From: Adineta vaga
Taxonomy: Eukaryota; Animalia; Rotifera
Reading direction: 5' to 3'
DNA: 64,000 nucleotides
Assembly: GCA_021613535.1 (NCBI GenBank)
Contig: CP075492.1
Span: forward strand, 15,066,001-15,130,000
Every line of letters starts with the position of its first letter. Position 1 is the first letter of the stretch. Made by a program: the position numbers and the translations under genes. The notes under the pieces were generated by a model. That model saw only the letters and a list, made by a program, of their open reading frames with translations, did not search any database and had not been told where the DNA came from. This document shows positions 24,297 to 35,883 of this stretch, in pieces.

Positions 24297-27200
24297 ATGA
24301 CTAAATGGATATATTTCATTTTATATACATACAGTCTTTGTCTTGTTATTCATACATATATTCTTCTGTATGATACTGAAACAAGTGATTCTACACAGTA
24401 TGCATATTGTATCTATTGGATGACAGATGCAACGATGAAATATTGTATACGGACAAATCTATCAGAAATATTTGATTTGGACATCAGTAATGATTGTTTT
24501 GATGGAAGTGAACGATGGTTGTTTCATGATGCTATTCAACATAATATTTCACCTTCTCATGTACTTACATGGAGTTCAAGTATTGAACTTGCAGATCGTT
24601 ATGCTGGTTTCTATTATAATGATTATTTAGTCATTAATCAGAAGGAATTTGTTTGCAATTGCAAATTACCTTGGACATTTGGACCACGATGTGAATTTGA
24701 ATTACTTCATGGAACTGTAACTTTTGAAGATGCTATAAAATTTCAATTCAAACAAAAAGAAAATGATCGATGGGGAATGCAGCGACATGGCGAAATTTTA
24801 TGTTATCAAACGATAGTTGAATGTGATTATGGACTTCTTTGTTTAGATTGGCGTAATATATGTGATGGTGAACAACAATGTATGAATGGAACCGATGAAA
24901 ACAATTGTGATCTACTTGAATTCAATGAATGTGAAGAAAATGAATATCGTTGTGTAAATGGAATGTGTATTGCTGAAGAATACTGGCTTGATGGGAAGTA
25001 TTATAAGGTTACATATGATTATAAGAGAAGGAAATATATTTCGTTTCGTTGTAGGTGATTTTGATTGTATGGATCGAAGTGATGAGCAACGAACAAAAGA
25101 TACGATATTCTGTCCATATACATCAGGTTCATTTCAATGTGAAGAAAGTTTATGTCTTCGTCAACAATGGTCATGTGGTGATGGACAATGTATTTGGGGA
25201 TTTTATCGATTGAGTTATAAACGAGATGCTAAACAATATTGTATAAATCTGCGGGAATTTAATTATATATGTGAAATTCATCCAAACATTGATCTTTGGT
25301 CACGATCAAATGGTTTATGTTGGAATTTAAATGGATATGTGGATATAAGAAATATGAACAATGAACATTTAAGTAATGCATCGAAATGTATCTATTTGAT
25401 TCGATGTGCATTATCAAATGGATTTGAATATCATTGTCCTTGTAATGAAAACAATTGTTCATCAATAATGCCCACTGTATGTCTAATTGGTATATCATAT
25501 GGATATCCCCTTGGAAATTTAATTCGACCATATATAGCTTTATATTAAGTTGGGATCGTGCATGGATTTCATCGGAACCGAATTCGGTTTATATGGATGG
25601 TAGCATTAAATGTCGAGGTTTTCTTGGTAAAACAGTAGAAGATATAGGACTCAATGTAAAAGATCGATATAAACTCGATAGATTTCCATTAATTGATCAT
25701 CTTTTCTGTAATCATGATGAAATTATTCGTGATAATCAATCAGATGTTCAATATCATCATTCATGTTGGAATGAATCATTGACATTCAATAATCAATCTT
25801 ATGCTTTTGTTGAAATTTGTAATAAATCATACGAATGTATTTCACAATATCGTATTGGTGATGATTATTCGGATTGTGGCGAAGATGGAAATGATTTACT
25901 CATGAATAATGTGAATATTTGTTCGAAACTTCAAAAATATCGTTTTCAATGTTCAAATGATCAATCAACTTGTCTACCAGTACGAGCACTTGGTGATCAA
26001 AAGAAAGATTGTAACAATCGACGTGATGAATTCATTGATGGAATTCATGAACCACTTGCTGAAATCGAATGTAAATATCGAAATGATTACGGTTGTCGTT
26101 TCTTAAAAGATTATATAAATCTTGATTCTCATTTTAACTATACTAATGGTTCTTCAGTCAGTTTCTTGGACAAACAAATACTTACGTTTCGATCATATTG
26201 TGATACATTCTGGGATTTACCATTTCATTTCGATGAAGTAATTGAAAATTGTCAACAATGGATATGTCAACGTCATCAGTATCAATGTCAAACAGGACAA
26301 TGTATCGAATATGATTGGTTTTGTGATGGTGAATGGGATTGTCCAGATGCTTCAGATGAACAAGCAGCACATCTGAATTCAAAACGTTTATCTCATAATT
26401 CATACTACAAGATTATGAAGTTCGATTAGAAACATGTCGAAAGCGTAATAAACAACAACCATTTGTACGTCGATGTAATGTAACAATTGAATATCCATGC
26501 CTTTTAGCTCATGTAGATAATCCTTTGAACATTGATTTACATCGTCCTTGTATTAATCTAACACAAATCGGTGATGGGAGAGAAGATTGTTATGGTGGTC
26601 TCGATGAAAAGAATACATTGGAGAATTGTGACGGATCCATGTTAGGTCCTTCATTTCGATGTCAAAATCAAGAATGTTTCGATTTTGAATCATTATGTGA
26701 TCAACAAATATCACATTCATGCAAAGATCCAATTTTATGTTTTCATAGAAGTCAAAATGAATCTTGTTCGGATAAAATGGATGTGTTGTGTCTTAATGGT
26801 GTATGCATGAAAGATGCGCGTTGTAATGGAATCTTCGGATGTTTGTATGGAGAAGATGAATATGCATGTCCTTCAATTGAAGCGATTGGAAATAAAAATT
26901 ATCGATATAGAAACAATAAACAAAATCAAATTATATATGGAAAACTATTCTGGCCAACGTTTCCTTCACCCATTTTCAAGATTTCCAACGAATTTCATGA
27001 TCAAAACATTGAATCACACGTGATCAATTCTACAGAGACTATGAATAGAACGCATAGAAATACTTCGTATTCTGATTCATATATATGCAATCGAGGTGTT
27101 GCTATAGCATATAGAAAACGAGATATTCCGATTTGCTTTTGTCCACCTTCGTATTATGGACGATGGTGTCAATATTTTAGTGATCGTATAACAATCATTA

Positions 27201-29460
27201 CTCATCTTGATTTAACTTCATTACCAAGATATTTCAATACAAGTCAATTGTATTGGTTCAAAATTGTTGCTTCACTTCTTTATTTTGAACATATAGTCGA
27301 TTTTTATGAATTCGATGTTAATTCAGAAATTGAATTGAAAAATTATATCAAACATAAATTCTATTTATTATATTCACTGTCGAGCAATATGAAAAGCACA
27401 AAGAACAACGTCATTTCAATCGTACAGATATTCTATATAATCATCCATATTCCGTTCGATTTGTTATCTGTCTATCGACTGAAGACGAAGTTCAGGAACT
27501 TGGATTATGGTTTTATCCAATTTATTTCGACTTTTTACCATCATTTCGTTTAGTAACCGTTTTGAAATTTCCTACATGGTACAAGAATATAACTTTAGAT
27601 CCTTGTATGAATAACAACATTGTATGTCCAAATAATTCTATATGTCAATCTATCTTCAATCATAAATATCCTAGTTTCGTATGTTCATGTCAAAGTGGTT
27701 TTTATGGTAACAACTGTGAGAATTTTGATTCAAATTGTTCATCATACTGTTTATCAAATGCATTATGTAAACCATTAGGTCGTGGTGAAATGACTAATAT
27801 AAATAATCCATTATGTATCTGTCCTCTTCATCATTTTGGTCCACATTGTTATTTACATCATGATGAATGTCATTCGCAACCATGTCGTAATAATGGAACT
27901 TGTCTTCTTACAAGTGATCCAAGTGGTCAACGATTATTTGTTTGTAATTGTTCAGCTGATTATCATGGAGATTACTGTGAAAAGAATAAGTTTACAATTG
28001 AAATCAATTTAAATATGAATCATCATGCACTCGCTTCTATTGTTCAACTTTATGATATTCGTCCTTATGATTTATATCTTCTAATTCAATATCAACAAGT
28101 AATGTATGACATTCCTGTTTCTATTCAATTTCATCTCTCAAAACCGATTGCACCCGCACTTGGAATTCTCAAATTATATGATCTATCATTCAATTTTCAA
28201 TACTATATCTTATATATTCAAGACAATGAAATGAGTATTAATATTAATACAACTCCTAAGCATTGCTTACGTATTACTACTACAAAGACGAGTGTTTTTG
28301 ATTATCATCTACTCTGCCGTGATAATACTGAACTATTATGTTTTCATGATAATAATTATTTATGTATATGTGAACAAAATCATACTCGTGTTGATTGTTT
28401 CGGTCTTGATTCATCGATAGATCAATGTAACTATTGTTTTTTCAATGGAAAATGTCTTCGAGGTGATACGAAGAATTCCGATGACTTTTTATGTTTGTGT
28501 CAAAAATGTTCTCATGGTCAACTATGTGAATTTACTACATATGCATTTGGTTTTACATTAGATTCATTGCTCGCAAATGATCAATTAATTATTCAAATAA
28601 TATACATATGTCTCGTTAGTTTTCTTTCTATGTTTGGTCTTCTGACAAACTTATGTTCATTAGCAGTATTTCGACGGCCTCAACAGCGTAAAGTTACAGC
28701 AGGAAATTATTTATATAGTGTTTCAATTCTTAATCAATGTGCACTGTTATTTTTACTTTTGAAATTTATTCATATTATAGGTGGTTTTACTTGGCATTAT
28801 CATGTCAATTTAATCTCTTGTAAAATCATATCCTATCTTCTCTTTGTAACAACACGAGCAACATTTTGGTTAACTAGTTGGATTACTTGTGATCGTCTTC
28901 ATATCGTTCTTTTTCCAAGTTCAACTTTATTCAAACGACCAAATACTGCGATCAGAATCACAATTATTACTCTTATCATAATAGCAATCATGCATATTCC
29001 TGATATCGTATATACTACAACTTCTAATAATAAATGTATTATTAATTTTGAACATCCGCTTATTTCTCTTTATAATCGTTTCAATACACTTCTTCATTAT
29101 CTTGGAACGTTTACCATTCAAACATTATCGATTACAATTCTCATTATTTTAGTAGCTCGAAGTCGCAAAAGAGTCACTGGAGATGAGAAAAATTTTCTAC
29201 AAATGTTTAAAACAATGTTTAACACGAAAAAAGAATTATATGTTACACCGATTATCATTGTTCTTAGTGCAGTACCTCAAACAATTCTATCTTTTAGTCT
29301 TTCATGTTCAGAACTATTCATATGGCAACGACATATACTTTTACCTGCTTATTTACTTTCATATGCACCACAAATACTTGGTTTTATTCTCTTTGTTTTA
29401 CCATCGAAGGGATATCGAATAGAATTTCAAAAAACAAAACTTGCACGAACATTTGTTTGA
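24297..29460 (+). pseudogene. Second LDLa/EGF-7TM receptor with three frameshifts
   Basis: Same architecture as 8135-12853 (CLDWRNICDGEQQC, CDGEWDCPDASDE, CPPSYYGRWC, WITCDRL). One intron near 24996-25054; frame changes near 25545, 26405 and 27390. Confidence 0.85.
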
Positions 29461-29674: not shown

Positions 29675-29979
29675 TTAAATAACTCTCGAATTAATAATAA
29701 CATGAAAATCTTAGTACCAATATGTTGTATGTTGACGAAGAGATATGCAGGATAAACATTTTTCGTAACCTAATCCTACTCTGTTCTATTACAGAGGTGT
29801 GAAAGAGAGACACCCTCAACATGTCATTGAAATAGAATTCAATTAGATAATTTTCGATATGCTATTACATTTATGTGTAAATTGGAATGCATCCCTAATT
29901 AGCTATGATCGAAATGTCTACATTATGGACTATTTATATATTCGAACATTTTCTGTTCGTACATGAAGAGTAGAAAAAA

Positions 29980-32266
29980 ATGATTCTTCGCACAATCGGA
30001 GCAAGCAAAACAAAACGATGGTTCAATAACATCATACATCGTCAATTTCATCGAACATCTCGATTACATTGTGGTGTTCTTTCATATATTTATAACTCAC
30101 CATCTTCAACTATTCGTTCGGATGAAGATTATCGATCGTTATTAAATGGTTTAAATACTTTGAAACATCGTGGTCCAGATGGACCACCATCGTTATGGCA
30201 AAATGAAGAAAAAACTGTTGGTCTTGGTCATACACGTTTATCAATCATTGATTTAAGTGATCGTGGTCGACAACCATTACATTCTTATGATAAAAAATTA
30301 CATTTATCAATGAATGGTGAATTGTATGATCATGATCGAATTCGTCAACAAGGCATTGAACAAGATCAATACCATTTTCTAAGTGAAAGTGATAGTGAAA
30401 TCGCTCTATATTTATATAGAAAGTATGGTTTAGAATTTGCGAAATATCTTCGTGGAGAATTTGCAATAACAATGTATGATGAAGAAAGAAAAGTATGTAG
30501 ATTTTGTTTCGTATTGATTAACTAACGATTCTTATCTTCGTTTGTAGATATTCATTGCTGTTCGAGATCGTTTTGGTATAAAACCATTATATTATACATA
30601 TTATGATAATAAACTTTTATTCGCTTCAGAAATCAAAGCTCTATTTGCATTTGGGTAAATTTTCTTTTGATAACATTTGAAAATCGAATAATTCGTTTTA
30701 AATTTTGTTCTAGTGTACCAGCTATTTGGAATGAAGAAGTTATTTATAATGTCGGACAATTACGTAGTTTACAAACTATTTTTAAGAATATTCAACAAGT
30801 TCCACCCGCTCATGTGTTAATAGCAACAGAAAATGGTACAATAAATTTATCGAAATATTATGAAATTTCATATATAACTCGTGAAGAAGAAAAAACTGAT
30901 CAACGTACTGAAAAAGAAATGATTGATGGTGTACGTGAACATCTTATTAATGCAATTCGTCTTCGTATGCGAGCGGATGTTAAAGTTGGAATTTTTCTAT
31001 CAGGTGGTTTAGATTCTTCTACTGTCTTAGGCATAGCAACAACGCTTACAGATCAATCAATTGATACATATTCAATTGCATTTAAAGAACACAATGAATT
31101 CAATGAACAGAATTTATGTATTGAAACAAATAAACATTTTGGTTCAAATAAAACAACACCACATATTGTTGAAATAACTCATGATCAATTAGCCGAATAT
31201 TTTGATGATTTTGTTTGTCAATATGAATATCCATTGATGGCAACAAGTCCAGTTGGAAAATATATTTTATCAAAAAAAGTTCAAGAAAATCATGGAAAAG
31301 TTGTTTTAACAGGAGAAGGAAGTGATGAAATCTTTTCTGGGTATGTTTTTCTCTATATCATATCTATATTGATTAATTATTTCCATTTTTAGTTATTCAC
31401 CTTTTCGTCAAGATTATCTTTCATATGATTTTCCAAAGGATCCATCAATTTGTCATTCAATAACAGATAAACAACGTGAAAAGATATCTGAAGCTTTATC
31501 AAGGAATATTTTAAGTGCCGTTAATGATCGTGATCAAAAATATCGAGAATCAGATTGTATTCAAACAATGGGTTATTTTCCAGCTCAAGAACGTTCATTA
31601 ATGTTTGCATGGGAGGGCATTTTCGCCGATGAACTGAAAGATAAATATGAACATTTTCGTTTAAATAGTTTTTATTTCAATGATTCATCGCTTTATGATT
31701 ATCATATTAAACAACAAATGATGAACTATGAAATTTCACGTGTACATTCAAGTCAATACATGATAATGAAAACGATTCTTCTCAATGTTCTTCTTAAAGC
31801 TTATGGTGATACGGCAGAAATGGGACATGCAATTGAAGGACGTTTAGCTTTTCTTGATCATTATTTAGTTGATTATGTCAATCATTTACCAACGAAAATG
31901 AAATTAAAACTTACAAATGATTCAATTATTGAAAAATATATTTTAAAAGAAGTTGCTCGACCATATATAACTGAAAATGTTTATCAAAGAGAAAAACATC
32001 CATTTGTTTCGCCACCATCATTACTGAATCCAAAATCGAAAATTTATCAATATATTCATGATACATTTAATTCGAAGGATATAAATCAATTAAAATATCT
32101 ATTTGCTATCGACCGATTACGTGAAAAATTAAATAATCTACATAAAAATCAAGAATATATGAATAAACAATATCTATGGGGAGAATTAGCGATTATGGAA
32201 GGACATTATTTAATGATATGTAGTTGTTTAGCATTGGCTAAACGTTTTCATGTTAAATATGATTAA
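29980..32266 (+). CDS. asnB: Asparagine synthetase B-like glutamine amidotransferase, microbial-type, with mitochondrial presequence; 4 exons
   Basis: CG start, HRGPD, LGHTRLSIIDL, NGELY, SDSE, RDRFGIKPLYY, LSGGLDSS, LTGEGSDEIFSGY, EGRLAFLD, REKHPF. Introns near 30493-30547, 30655-30713 and 31341-31392. Confidence 0.9.
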
Positions 32267-32425
32267 AACTGTATCGAATTGATTATTGTAAATAAAATAA
32301 AAAAACTATGTATTGTAAACCTGTTCTAGTATGGGCACCATCGTGACCAAGAAATAGTGTTCACTCGAAAGAGGTGCTCATTATCGAGAGATTTTTACTG
32401 TATTTGTTTTATAGTAAAAGTTAAT

Positions 32426-33794
32426 TTATTTAATTAAGATAGGTTCAATAAATGTTAATGAATCAACTGCAGCTTCACTTGATTGAGCCATTCGTACAAT
32501 GGCATTTATCGTATCATTAGTTGCTTTATATTTTGCTCTAATACTAGCAATCACTGTTCCTTCATCATCAATAAATAGATCGCTGACTTGTAATTCATTC
32601 AATCCGAATTGAGCTCCGTAATCAATATAAATCGCTTCCGCCATGTTACATTCAACAGTTTGACATATGACAAACATATATAAAGGAATATTCGATGGAT
32701 ACATGGAACCTGTTAAATGAAAGATGGGCAAATCAGTACGTGGATTTATTACAACTTGAACTTTTGTCACTGGAGATCGCGTTGGCAATGGTCGATTAGG
32801 AATAGTCAGTTGTAATTGAATGGATTCAGTACAATCAGCATCAATACAATGAATATAAGTGATATCTGAAACAAACAAAAAGAACATTTCAGACATTAAG
32901 AAAACCATGCAAAAATCGAAATATTCTACCAGATTGTGGTGTTTGTCCAGTAGTAGTAATTGTAAAACGAAACTGTGAATCAACCGTTAAATAAACGAAA
33001 TAAACAAAGTTACGATCAGTTTTAAATTGATTGACTAATGTTTCATTGCATGATACAGTTAAACAATGAATTAAATTCAGTTCATTATTGCATAAAGTAA
33101 GCCATGATGGAAAACCATGTCGATTGATAGCTACATCGATACTTGTACCTAAACAATTGGCATCTCCCGTTAAATTAAATGGTAAGGAAACAACTGAACG
33201 TGATAATTGACATAACGGATCTTGACAGGTTTCAATTGTATATCCGGTTACTCGATTATCACGTGAAGCATATTTGGCTTCTGGAATTAACATTGTTGGT
33301 AAGCCCTGCGATTGAGTAAATGTTAAACGTAGACCAGCTTGACCAAATCCAGAACTATCAACCGTATTCATTACTCGAGGTTTTGAACAATTGGAATCTT
33401 CAGGTGCACAAACAATGAGTTCTGTATCACGATTTGGTTTTGCATATCCAGTTGATAAGAAAAACTGAGCATTACTAATCGTAGGAGATTGTTGATAGAT
33501 TCGACGCGGTGATACACCACCGTATGCTAATCGGGCAACATTCAAACCAGGCATTGGTATCATATTTACTTGACTACAATCACGTGTTTTACATGTAAAT
33601 ACTGTCGATTTATCATGAAAAGAATATTGAAAGATTGATGGTTGGAAAGTGATCGGTATTAAACTAGCTGAAAAATCTGGATAGAGTGACATAGGTGTTG
33701 TAATCCATGCCGTAGCAGAGATAATTTTGTATGTTGATGATGCACTCCAAATAAGTTTTATAATACTGATTAAAAAAAGAAAGACTGCTTTCAT
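32426..33794 (-). CDS. Secreted protein with six C-x(4-6)-C repeats (possible beta-propeller), 2 exons
   Basis: Signal peptide MKAVFLFLISIIKLIWSA; intron 32929-32866 joins the two ORFs in frame. Confidence 0.7.
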
Positions 33795-35115
33795 TTCGTT
33801 TCTATATTCTCAATTTAAATCAAACGTCAGTCTTTGCTTCAGCACAATGAATATATATATATATATATAGATTATTTTATGAGAATATTTGACAGATGGA
33901 TGCATATGACTAAATAGAATAACAACGATTATATAGCTCATTACTTTTTACAGAGTATTCTTTCAAAATATAATACTTATTAATAATTATTTAATATATA
34001 AGTTAACTTATTCTTTGGTCAAGTAATATCATATCGATTTATCGATTAAAAAGATAACAAGTATTGGTAATCAACCGCCTGCCTTTCCTATCATTGTTAG
34101 ATCAACCAGTGAATGAATAAATATACACAAATAAGATTGAGATGGGAATATGTCATTCAAAAGATTTTCAAGTTATTATAACGGAAACTGTGTTAATTCT
34201 TTTATGAGTACATAGAATTCTCATATCTCTGTCACAATATTTTGCTCGTCGAACGGTTTTTTACTATTAAACTTTTCATACAAATTTTTAATAATTCAAG
34301 ATAACAAAAGCAATAGGAAACGATTCGATTGTTTTATTTCTATACATTTGTATTGAGAATTTTCTCATCAAGGTTAAATCAGGTACATATTAACATCTCT
34401 ATATTTTAAATGTACCCATAACCTACATGCAGATATAGATCTAGGTACTGTTTTTTTTCTTTTTCTGTTGTTTTGTCCTTGTCTTTTTTCATCTACTGAT
34501 CGTTATTTTCATGTTCATGTTATTATGTGATGTCGGCTTATAAAAAAAAGAACGTTCCCATTTCCACCATCACCAAACTTATAAATTAAATTTTCAATAA
34601 ATAATTTAATTGGCCAGACAGTACGAATTCGCACTTCCCATTTCGTTTATGCAATGTATTACAACATAGTTAATTTGGTCATGCTTCATATACAGGTATT
34701 GATAAGAGAAGAAGAGAAGGGAAAAAAATCACCTTTTAAATGTGAAACTTCTTTTCGCGTCTTTTCTCCTCGCAATATATGAAAATAACCTTGTACATCA
34801 TCATCTACATATCTACCTGTACATATAAGTATGAACCACGTGTTAATCAAAATACTCCCTAATAAGAATGGATATTTTGTTTTATGTGTTAATATTGTTA
34901 TTGACATAATTTTTTTTCACTCGAGCGATTGCTACTCAGGTAGAGCTGTCTTATTTCTTTTCACTCATTTGAATTTATTGAGAGAAAAGACATCAGCGGA
35001 TAGATATGTATCTTTACACATTTCTTTCCTTTATCTCCGAGAATAGAAATCAATTTAGAGTGCATAGCATTTGTTTTGTACTGTATTTTTTTATTTAGTC
35101 CAATTATTCAGAACA

Positions 35116-35883
35116 ATGAAAGATTCATATCGTACGCCAACTACAATATCTTTCTATTCAAAAAAGAAAAATACATTTCTCATTTACATTCTACGAAATG
35201 GTTTAATTCGTTCGATTCTATTATTTCTCTTAATTCTACTTCTTTCACTTGTTTTTATCTTGGAATTCTATTATCAATATGGTCATTGTTCTGTTGCAGA
35301 AAAATATTCCAAGAAAAATATCAAATTAACTCATCGAACAATGGATATGTTAGATGATCTATCCATCATTTATTGGCCTGATTGTCAATCATTATTAAAT
35401 GTTCTCAGAAATGAAACATATAATCCATGGGATCAAGATGTTGATTTATCAATTCAATGGCCATTAGAATCCAATCATGTTCATTCAGAACTCAATAATA
35501 TTCAACTGTTTATTGAAAAATTAGAAGAATATGATTTTGGTGTTGAATATTATCCAGAGAGAAAATTATTTTCATTATCATCTCATAATGGAAAATCCGA
35601 TCGACAGCCACATGTTGATATTTGGTTATGGAATCGACAATATAAAAATATAAATAATGAAGAAAAAGAAGTATTAGAATTATTTGATCATAGTTTTAAA
35701 TATCAATCAAGATTAATATCAGATATTCATCCATTAAGATCTGCGATATGGTTAGGAAGAATGGTGAAAATACCGAATGAAGCACATGAAATTTCACGTA
35801 AAGAATATGGCGGATCATATATGAAAGCTCTTATATATCGAGGCAATTGTTTTCATAACCTTTTTGATGGTCGATGGTTTTAA
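35116..35883 (+). CDS. LicD/fukutin-related nucleotidyltransferase-fold type II membrane protein, copy 1
   Basis: N-terminal TM, SLLNVLRN...PWDQDVDL, PHVDIW, KIPN...EYG; 255 aa. Confidence 0.8.
   Translation: MKDSYRTPTTISFYSKKKNTFLIYILRNGLIRSILLFLLILLLSLVFILEFYYQYGHCSVAEKYSKKNIKLTHRTMDMLDDLSIIYWPDCQSLLNVLRNETYNPWDQDVDLSIQWPLESNHVHSELNNIQLFIEKLEEYDFGVEYYPERKLFSLSSHNGKSDRQPHVDIWLWNRQYKNINNEEKEVLELFDHSFKYQSRLISDIHPLRSAIWLGRMVKIPNEAHEISRKEYGGSYMKALIYRGNCFHNLFDGRWF

Follow-up and report, generated by a model that had tools for sequence, protein, structure and literature searches.

A leader with an R-10-type register ahead of the catalytic cysteine in an AsnB-type amidotransferase of the bdelloid rotifer Adineta vaga

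Class II glutamine amidotransferases use a catalytic cysteine that must be residue 1. A gene of this class in the bdelloid rotifer Adineta vaga encodes that cysteine at residue 31, behind a leader of 30 codons, which raises the question of how the residue could be set free. The gene, of four exons and 706 codons (2118 nt), lies on the + strand at 29980-32266 of the window, by which is meant the whole stretch of 64,000 nucleotides that was analysed (15,066,001-15,130,000 of contig 3 in a 100.8-Mb, six-contig assembly of A. vaga). An earlier note on this DNA had proposed that the cysteine is unmasked by two-step processing in mitochondria. The elements at the beginning of the gene are the following:

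29971-29973, + strand: in-frame TAG stop preceding the start; the ATG at 29980 is the first possible AUG in frame.
29980-30069, + strand: leader, codons 1-30, basic and acid-free; predicted mitochondrial presequence.
30040-30045, + strand: R21-Q22, Arg at -10, with a cut by the mitochondrial processing peptidase (MPP) predicted after Q22 (from the sequence and the rule in PMC7996597).
30046-30069, + strand: F23-H30, predicted octapeptide, with F at -8 and T at -5, that mitochondrial intermediate peptidase (MIP/Oct1) would take off, as indicated by conservation.
30070-30075, + strand: Cys31-Gly32 (TGT GGT), the N-terminal nucleophile (Ntn) site of the glutaminase domain, as indicated by an invariant column and structural alignment.

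The window gene is a class II (Ntn) glutamine amidotransferase of AsnB type. Its exons were searched singly, and wherever a full-length protein was required the deposited I4U23_015748 (P0214, 706 aa) was used, which is identical to the predicted protein. The matches to Pfam GATase_6, GATase_7 and Asn_synthase were all past their cut-offs, as was the match to TIGR01536 for the AsnB family (382.1 bits, cut-off 267.1); the strict asparagine synthetase B equivalog NF006949 gave 261.9 bits, below its cut-off of 499. In a MAFFT alignment of the window protein with E. coli AsnB (K-12 record) and 35 relatives, Cys31-Gly32 fell in the Cys1 column of E. coli AsnB, the C-G column being invariant in all relatives. 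The glutamine-site residues R49, N74, G75, E76 and D98 (E. coli numbering, here and for the AsnB residues below) were kept in the window protein and all 36 aligned relatives, and the alignment also showed that SGGxDS, E348, D351, E352, E398, R400, K429 and K449 are all kept; the roles of the AsnB residues were taken from PMC6748925.

An AlphaFold (AF2) model built from a 40-sequence alignment had a mean predicted local distance difference test score (pLDDT) of 86.9 and a predicted template modelling score (pTM) of 0.90, with the first strand at residues 32-38. In structural alignments, residue 31 of the model fell on residue 1 of 1ct9 (AsnB), 6gq3 (ASNS), 1xff (GlmS), 1ecb (PurF) and 1ofe (GltS). 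The sequence alignment and the predicted structure together identify Cys31 as the Ntn nucleophile, as the earlier note had taken it to be.

If the leader were retained, the glutaminase would go unused, and the protein would work with free ammonia or have another role. This is very improbable. All glutamine-binding and nucleophile residues are invariant, and comparison of the three A. vaga paralogues gave a ratio of nonsynonymous to synonymous substitution (dN/dS) of 0.11-0.23 in the mature exon-1 codons at dS of about 0.55, which is purifying selection on this domain. The AF2 model, moreover, gives the leader no packed structure; residues 1-29 have pLDDT below 50, and a helix is drawn at 2-19.

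Another way out of the difficulty would be that the 5' end has been mis-modelled and that a different first exon or start yields the usual Met-Cys. Bdelloids use trans-splicing, a point in favour of such an error; in all other respects it is scarcely credible. Inspection of the sequence found no AG acceptor just before TGT 30070, and the 30 leader codons, which contain 7 Arg/Lys but neither Asp/Glu nor a further Met, read directly into TGT GGT at 30070-30075. Both paralogues have a comparably long open leader, as do 40 distinct sequences from numerous species, and the independent deposited annotation has the same start.

The two paralogues (contig 3, 13.98 Mb and 18.20 Mb), one of them deposited as I4U23_016645 (P0063), have leaders of 30 residues in which the R/F/T register is the same. 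When exon 1 was used in a word search, 17 bdelloid exon-1 open reading frames (ORFs) were returned, all of them leader-bearing and none starting with Met-Cys, and a full HMMER scan with further searches added full-length proteins of Adineta and Rotaria. Outside the rotifers, leaders were found on proteins with 36-41% identity to the rotifer ones (P0064, P0065, P0066, P0083, P0099, P0159, P0167, P0219, P0229, P0280 and P0331-P0333). The close relatives in bacteria and in Dikarya/Mucorales all start with Met-Cys-Gly.

According to the R-10 rule, as given in PMC7996597, the mature N-terminus is preceded by R at -10, F/L/I at -8 and S/T/G at -5. With Cys31 as the mature end, the window leader fits the rule; R21 (30040-30042), F23 (30046-30048) and T26 (30055-30057) stand at exactly -10, -8 and -5. 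The leader set comprised 40 distinct sequences, 24 from bdelloids and 16 from other eukaryotes, of 17-37 residues. The full motif occurred in exact register in 28 of these 40, about 0.3 being expected from shuffling within leaders (a comparison made on 41 leaders, with 27-28 observed); it was present in 20/24 bdelloid leaders and 8/16 of the others. F/L/I at -8 was nearly universal (24/24 and 14/16, 38/40 in total), R at -10 was found in 21/24 and 11/16, and S/T at -5 was common. At least six deep lineages keep the R-10 register. Most of the exceptions inspected have Arg at -2; in P0016, P0229 and P0280, which are of this kind, MPP alone could expose the cysteine. The description in the earlier note, of a basic, acid-free leader of 30 residues with no Met before the Cys codon (30070-30072) and with R21, F23 and T26 in R-10 spacing, thus agrees with the sequence, and the spacing is kept in orthologues, so that the refuting condition which the note had set for orthologues, a Met-Cys start or lost spacing, does not overturn its idea.

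The leaders also have the composition of matrix presequences. Acidic residues make up 0.8% of the leaders vs 13% of the mature parts (binomial 1e-51), while 19% of leader residues are basic and 18% are Ser/Thr. Between the three paralogues dN/dS was 0.6-2.0, near neutral, in codons 2-20 and 0.4-0.6 in codons 21-30; in codons 2-20 the sequence drifts while length and composition are kept. This pattern of a free sequence, a constrained composition and a constrained cleavage region is what is expected of a presequence. By inspection, two further targeting signals gave no fit, namely the type 2 peroxisomal targeting signal (PTS2) and a secretory signal, the leader being without a hydrophobic core.

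The explanation towards which we lean, with some reserve, is that Cys31 is unmasked in dependence on import, by MPP and then MIP/Oct1. The enzyme would be made as an inactive precursor, with the catalytic Cys at residue 31 rather than 1. Residues ~1-20, which look like a matrix-targeting presequence, would direct it to mitochondria, and residues 21-30 would form the R-10 site. A cut by MPP after Gln22 would place Phe23 at the N-terminus, and removal of the octapeptide Phe23-His30 by MIP/Oct1 would leave Cys31 as a free N-terminus inside mitochondria. Only then would the glutaminase site work, passing ammonia to the ATP-dependent adenylating pyrophosphate-loop (PP-loop) domain, which would amidate a carboxylate, possibly that of aspartate. 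Import, both cleavages and the substrate are what we infer; what the analysis shows is the gene model, Cys31 as the nucleophile, the kept catalytic residues, purifying selection acting on the mature protein and a motif register conserved in many lineages. That MIP would be the activating protease throughout the clade, in bdelloids and fungus-like eukaryotes alike, with the enzyme switched on only in the matrix, is a wider proposal that we hold only tentatively.

Several points weigh against unmasking by MPP and MIP/Oct1. Many of the leaders come from close relatives, and the counts given above overstate independence. M3 peptidase loci were found on contigs 2 and 4 of the A. vaga genome. The gene of an M3A peptidase on contig 2 (3.057 Mb), in itself a point in favour, has its zinc-site signature intact, F-H-E-F-G-H-A-I-H-S and then R-T-R-Y-Q-H, which resembles that of mitochondrial intermediate peptidases; it is no more than a candidate MIP. 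The published zinc-site signature is common to all M3A enzymes, look-ups of the M3 exons in PDB and the Atlas did not separate MIP from thimet-like enzymes, and a literature search for a MIP motif found nothing. Mammalian MDH2 is a classic R-10 substrate. Two MDH2-like genes of A. vaga (contig 5, 14.644 Mb; contig 2, 2.661 Mb) have in their first exons a short leader with Arg-Tyr-Ala-Ser, which is R-2-like, and they therefore provide no positive control for the use of R-10 sites in this animal. Finally, 18 leaders had a hydrophobic moment that did not significantly exceed that of shuffles, and the related GPRAT enzymes are reported to remove their own propeptides; these last two points bear each on a different rival.

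The lack of a significant amphipathic moment would suit a propeptide that has nothing to do with mitochondria, the protein being a zymogen, cytosolic or elsewhere, matured by self-cleavage or by another protease. Class II amidotransferases with propeptides exist outside organelles, an example being B. subtilis GltA, where the match to 7mfm_G begins at residue 22. We regard this as distinctly unlikely for the rotifer protein, as the leaders have the composition of matrix presequences (acid-free, rich in Arg/Lys and Ser/Thr, 17-37 residues long), vary in sequence while keeping that composition, carry R-10 or R-2 sites in exact register with the Cys, and show neither a secretory hydrophobic core nor a PTS2 pattern.

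The other rival accepts mitochondrial targeting and removal of the targeting part by MPP, and supposes that the enzyme then cleaves off a short propeptide by itself, Oct1 being uninvolved. The propeptides of eukaryotic and many microbial GPRAT enzymes are reported to be cut autocatalytically to give an N-terminal Cys, and residues 75-86 were lost from recombinant AtGPRAT2 when it was made in E. coli (PMC7056826), so that Oct1 is not required for the last cut in the rotifer protein. The matched ranges of 6lbp and 7mfm_G in the fold search begin at residues 87 and 22, respectively, the Cys standing behind a leader there too. The rotifer leaders, on the other side, have R at -10, F at -8 and S/T at -5 with exactly eight residues before the Cys, which is the recognition rule of MIP. 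PurF propeptides differ, being acidic and ending in Glu-Glu, and we know of no enzyme of the AsnB family that processes itself. Self-cleavage is judged unlikely; for the last step it is the main rival.

Unmasking by MIP/Oct1 would have its nearest parallels in two known systems. Like R-10 mitochondrial precursors such as mouse Prx V, the rotifer protein has R at -10, F at -8 and S/T at -5 in a basic, acid-free presequence. For known substrates, PMC7996597 ascribes to the second cut a stabilising effect, in that it takes away a destabilising N-terminal residue, whereas here the predicted second cut would create the catalytic residue itself. Like Arabidopsis GPRAT2 (with Cys87 in AtGPRAT2) and the propeptide-bearing PurF and GltS enzymes, it has the catalytic Cys behind a removable N-terminal extension; those proteins, however, are plastid or bacterial, belong to other subfamilies and are reportedly autocatalytic, whereas the present extension is a mitochondrial R-10-like presequence, as predicted, on an AsnB-type enzyme. 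Each of the components is already known: AsnB enzymes, presequences of R-10 type and Ntn amidotransferases masked by a leader. No paper was found in a literature search on asparagine synthetase or synthase of bdelloids or Adineta.

The leader raises the further question of where the gene came from. A tree of 66 sequences (IQ-TREE quick search, leaders removed before alignment) placed the rotifer proteins in one clade with 100 support in the Shimodaira-Hasegawa-like approximate likelihood ratio test (SH-aLRT). Around them is a eukaryotic clade (SH-aLRT 100) that also takes in the other proteins with leaders and a clade of fungal proteins starting Met-Cys (100), and this eukaryotic clade is nested among bacterial enzymes of ~640 residues; the sister of the rotifers was P0066+P0219 (SH-aLRT 91). 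Constraining all leader-bearing sequences to stay together gave a slightly better likelihood (p-AU, from the approximately unbiased test, 0.556). A single origin of the leader, which is the probable course within this eukaryotic clade, is compatible with the sequence data, and the leader therefore probably predates the rotifer gene.

In a word search of a 5.8-billion-protein collection, the only animals among the best 120 matches to P0063 were Adineta and Rotaria, the next matches after the bdelloids being non-animal at ~40% identity. The window protein did not group with animal ASNS; it sits with fungal and other eukaryotic sequences, and among the best 120 matches and in the tree it has no orthologue in other animals and is nested among non-animal sequences. 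To human ASNS (6GQ3) it is related by superfamily and fold (Z 32.2), but the score is 95 bits only, compared with ~470 bits between the paralogue P0063 and microbial-type relatives. A separate, canonical ASNS of metazoan type is present in A. vaga on contig 6 at 11.008-11.010 Mb, in several exons, and starts with Met-Cys-Gly-Ile-Trp. These results bear out the earlier note in placing the enzyme with microbial-type AsnB proteins and apart from animal ASNS. Weaker Asn_synthase matches were seen on contig 1 at 8.14 Mb, with internal stops, and on contig 6 at 8.967 Mb.

Horizontal acquisition into bdelloids is on this evidence probable. The alternative would be vertical descent from an early eukaryote or opisthokont with loss in all other animals; its strength is that the nearest relatives are eukaryotes sharing the leader and that a single leader-bearing clade is not rejected. 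We judge it rather unlikely. Bdelloids are known for abundant foreign genes, Adineta and Rotaria are the only animals in the match list just described, and the contigs of the relatives look fungal (Zn_clus, many G-alpha genes). Two of the non-rotifer leader-bearing genes are uninterrupted ORFs on contigs of 28-46 kb, which carry ubiquitin, Zn_clus, P450, kinase fragments and many G-alpha genes, a gene content that suggests eukaryotic, fungus-like DNA. Among the JGI samples 3300062526 and 3300062135, one of low complexity has two different leader-bearing paralogues, P0213 and P0159, whose contigs are likewise fungus-like and rich in G-alpha genes.

The earlier note had further regarded the enzyme as horizontally acquired and domesticated by introns. 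Three short introns and a host-like GC content (gene 29%, window 30%, contigs of relatives 39-43%) are consistent with that view. The leader, however, is no feature of domestication in rotifers, as the same leader and motif occur in non-rotifer eukaryotes. The donor, if there was a transfer, was for this reason probably a eukaryote that already bore the leader, and the leader is probably not a rotifer addition.

What the enzyme amidates is a question on which the second domain offers some hints. Like E. coli AsnB (1CT9), the rotifer protein has the two-domain fold (Z 35.5, 480 residues aligned), the Cys nucleophile with its glutamine site, the PP-loop, E348, D351 and K449. The amino-group pocket E348/D351/E352 is kept, as are the equivalents of E364/D367/E368. 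Unlike the E. coli enzyme, it has a 30-residue leader in place of the initiator Met, an insert of ~100-130 residues, a gap at I323-R324 and a hydrophobic residue at D384. The insert, after E. coli residue 381, is family-wide, and throughout the ~640-aa family the I323-R324 columns are empty and the D384 position has a hydrophobic residue, in a part of the MAFFT alignment that is uncertain beside the large insert. The third residue on the aspartate side, R387, which with R324 and D384 goes with the human D400/R403 network, has Lys/Arg in its column throughout the family, in an alignment again uncertain beside the insert. The C-terminal motif to which the earlier note had drawn attention was located at 31805-31858 in exon 4. 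In this conserved block, where the alignment is uncertain, the rotifer proteins depart from their relatives: of the five aligned, three have Thr and one has Lys in place of the Arg of the family G-D-R, and four have Ala instead of the Pro ahead of F-L-D.

The best structural match to the model was the TsnB9 hydroxyamidotransferase (7YLZ; Z 35.9, 556/576 residues), which is AsnB-like and of similar length. The two proteins have 23% identity, and, unlike the rotifer protein, TsnB9 has no long leader, its match starting from residue 2. We take TsnB9 to be a bacterial enzyme of secondary metabolism that does not act on aspartate; the likeness would indicate only that the fold serves other substrates as well. 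A substrate other than aspartate is possible for the rotifer enzyme, the suggestion coming from the uncertain alignment alone. The gene neighbourhoods of two bacterial relatives had no common context that would hint at the substrate.

The remainder of the gene was modelled as follows. The four exon translations match P0214 at offsets 0/171/207/416, and the three introns are at positions common to all paralogues.

29980-30492, + strand: exon 1, 171 codons, phase 0, with the Pfam GATase_6/GATase_7 matches.
30493-30547, + strand: intron 1, 55 nt, GT..AG, at a position common to both paralogues and Rotaria-like exon-1 ORFs.
30548-30654, + strand: exon 2, from the deposited-protein match.
30655-30713, + strand: intron 2, 59 nt, position common to the paralogues.
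30714-31340, + strand: exon 3, Pfam Asn_synthase, mapped to E. coli AsnB residues.
31000-31017, + strand: PP-loop SGGLDS, in exon 3.
31315-31329, + strand: E408/D411/E412, in exon 3.
31341-31392, + strand: intron 3, 52 nt, position common to the paralogues.
31393-32266, + strand: exon 4, with stop TAA at 32264-32266, holding the family insert and the C-terminal motif at 31805-31858.
32291-32296, + strand: AATAAA, a putative polyadenylation-like signal, 25 nt past the stop, read from the sequence.

In the paralogues, the intron at protein position 417/418 is without an in-frame stop, and a six-frame search reads through it as a 525-aa frame. Two of the exon-1 ORFs that public assemblies gave for bdelloids, P0013 and P0014, are continuous through the exon 1/2 junction, intron 1 being absent, and in a third, P0009, a stop-free intron 1 is read through; intron 1 is therefore not constant across bdelloid lineages or copies.

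Just upstream of the gene, at 26525-29460 on the + strand, are two long ORFs, one of them Cys-rich; the second, of 632 aa, matches EGF weakly and has hydrophobic, membrane-like segments after these matches. The locus is possibly a receptor-like gene. Downstream, ORFs of 185 and 301 aa in overlapping frames (32426-33794, - strand) gave no Pfam match, and a 270-aa ORF at 35071-35883 on the + strand matches the LicD family marginally, at 23.7 bits against a cut-off of 22.6.

The usual explanation of MIP/Oct1 is quality control, in which a destabilising N-terminal residue is swapped for another. If the mechanism proposed here is true, this would be the first MIP/Oct1 cleavage needed for catalysis rather than for stability, giving the peptidase a direct activating role, and glutaminase activity would be a simple read-out of its action. 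It would also mean that there is a mitochondrial pathway of glutamine-dependent amidation. For the bdelloids and their foreign genes, the locus would be an example of a targeting signal that seemingly arrived with the gene and was not added later. What the data suggest is that bdelloids, together with some further eukaryotes, have a glutamine-dependent amidotransferase that had escaped notice and is probably mitochondrial, beside the ordinary cytosolic asparagine synthetase.

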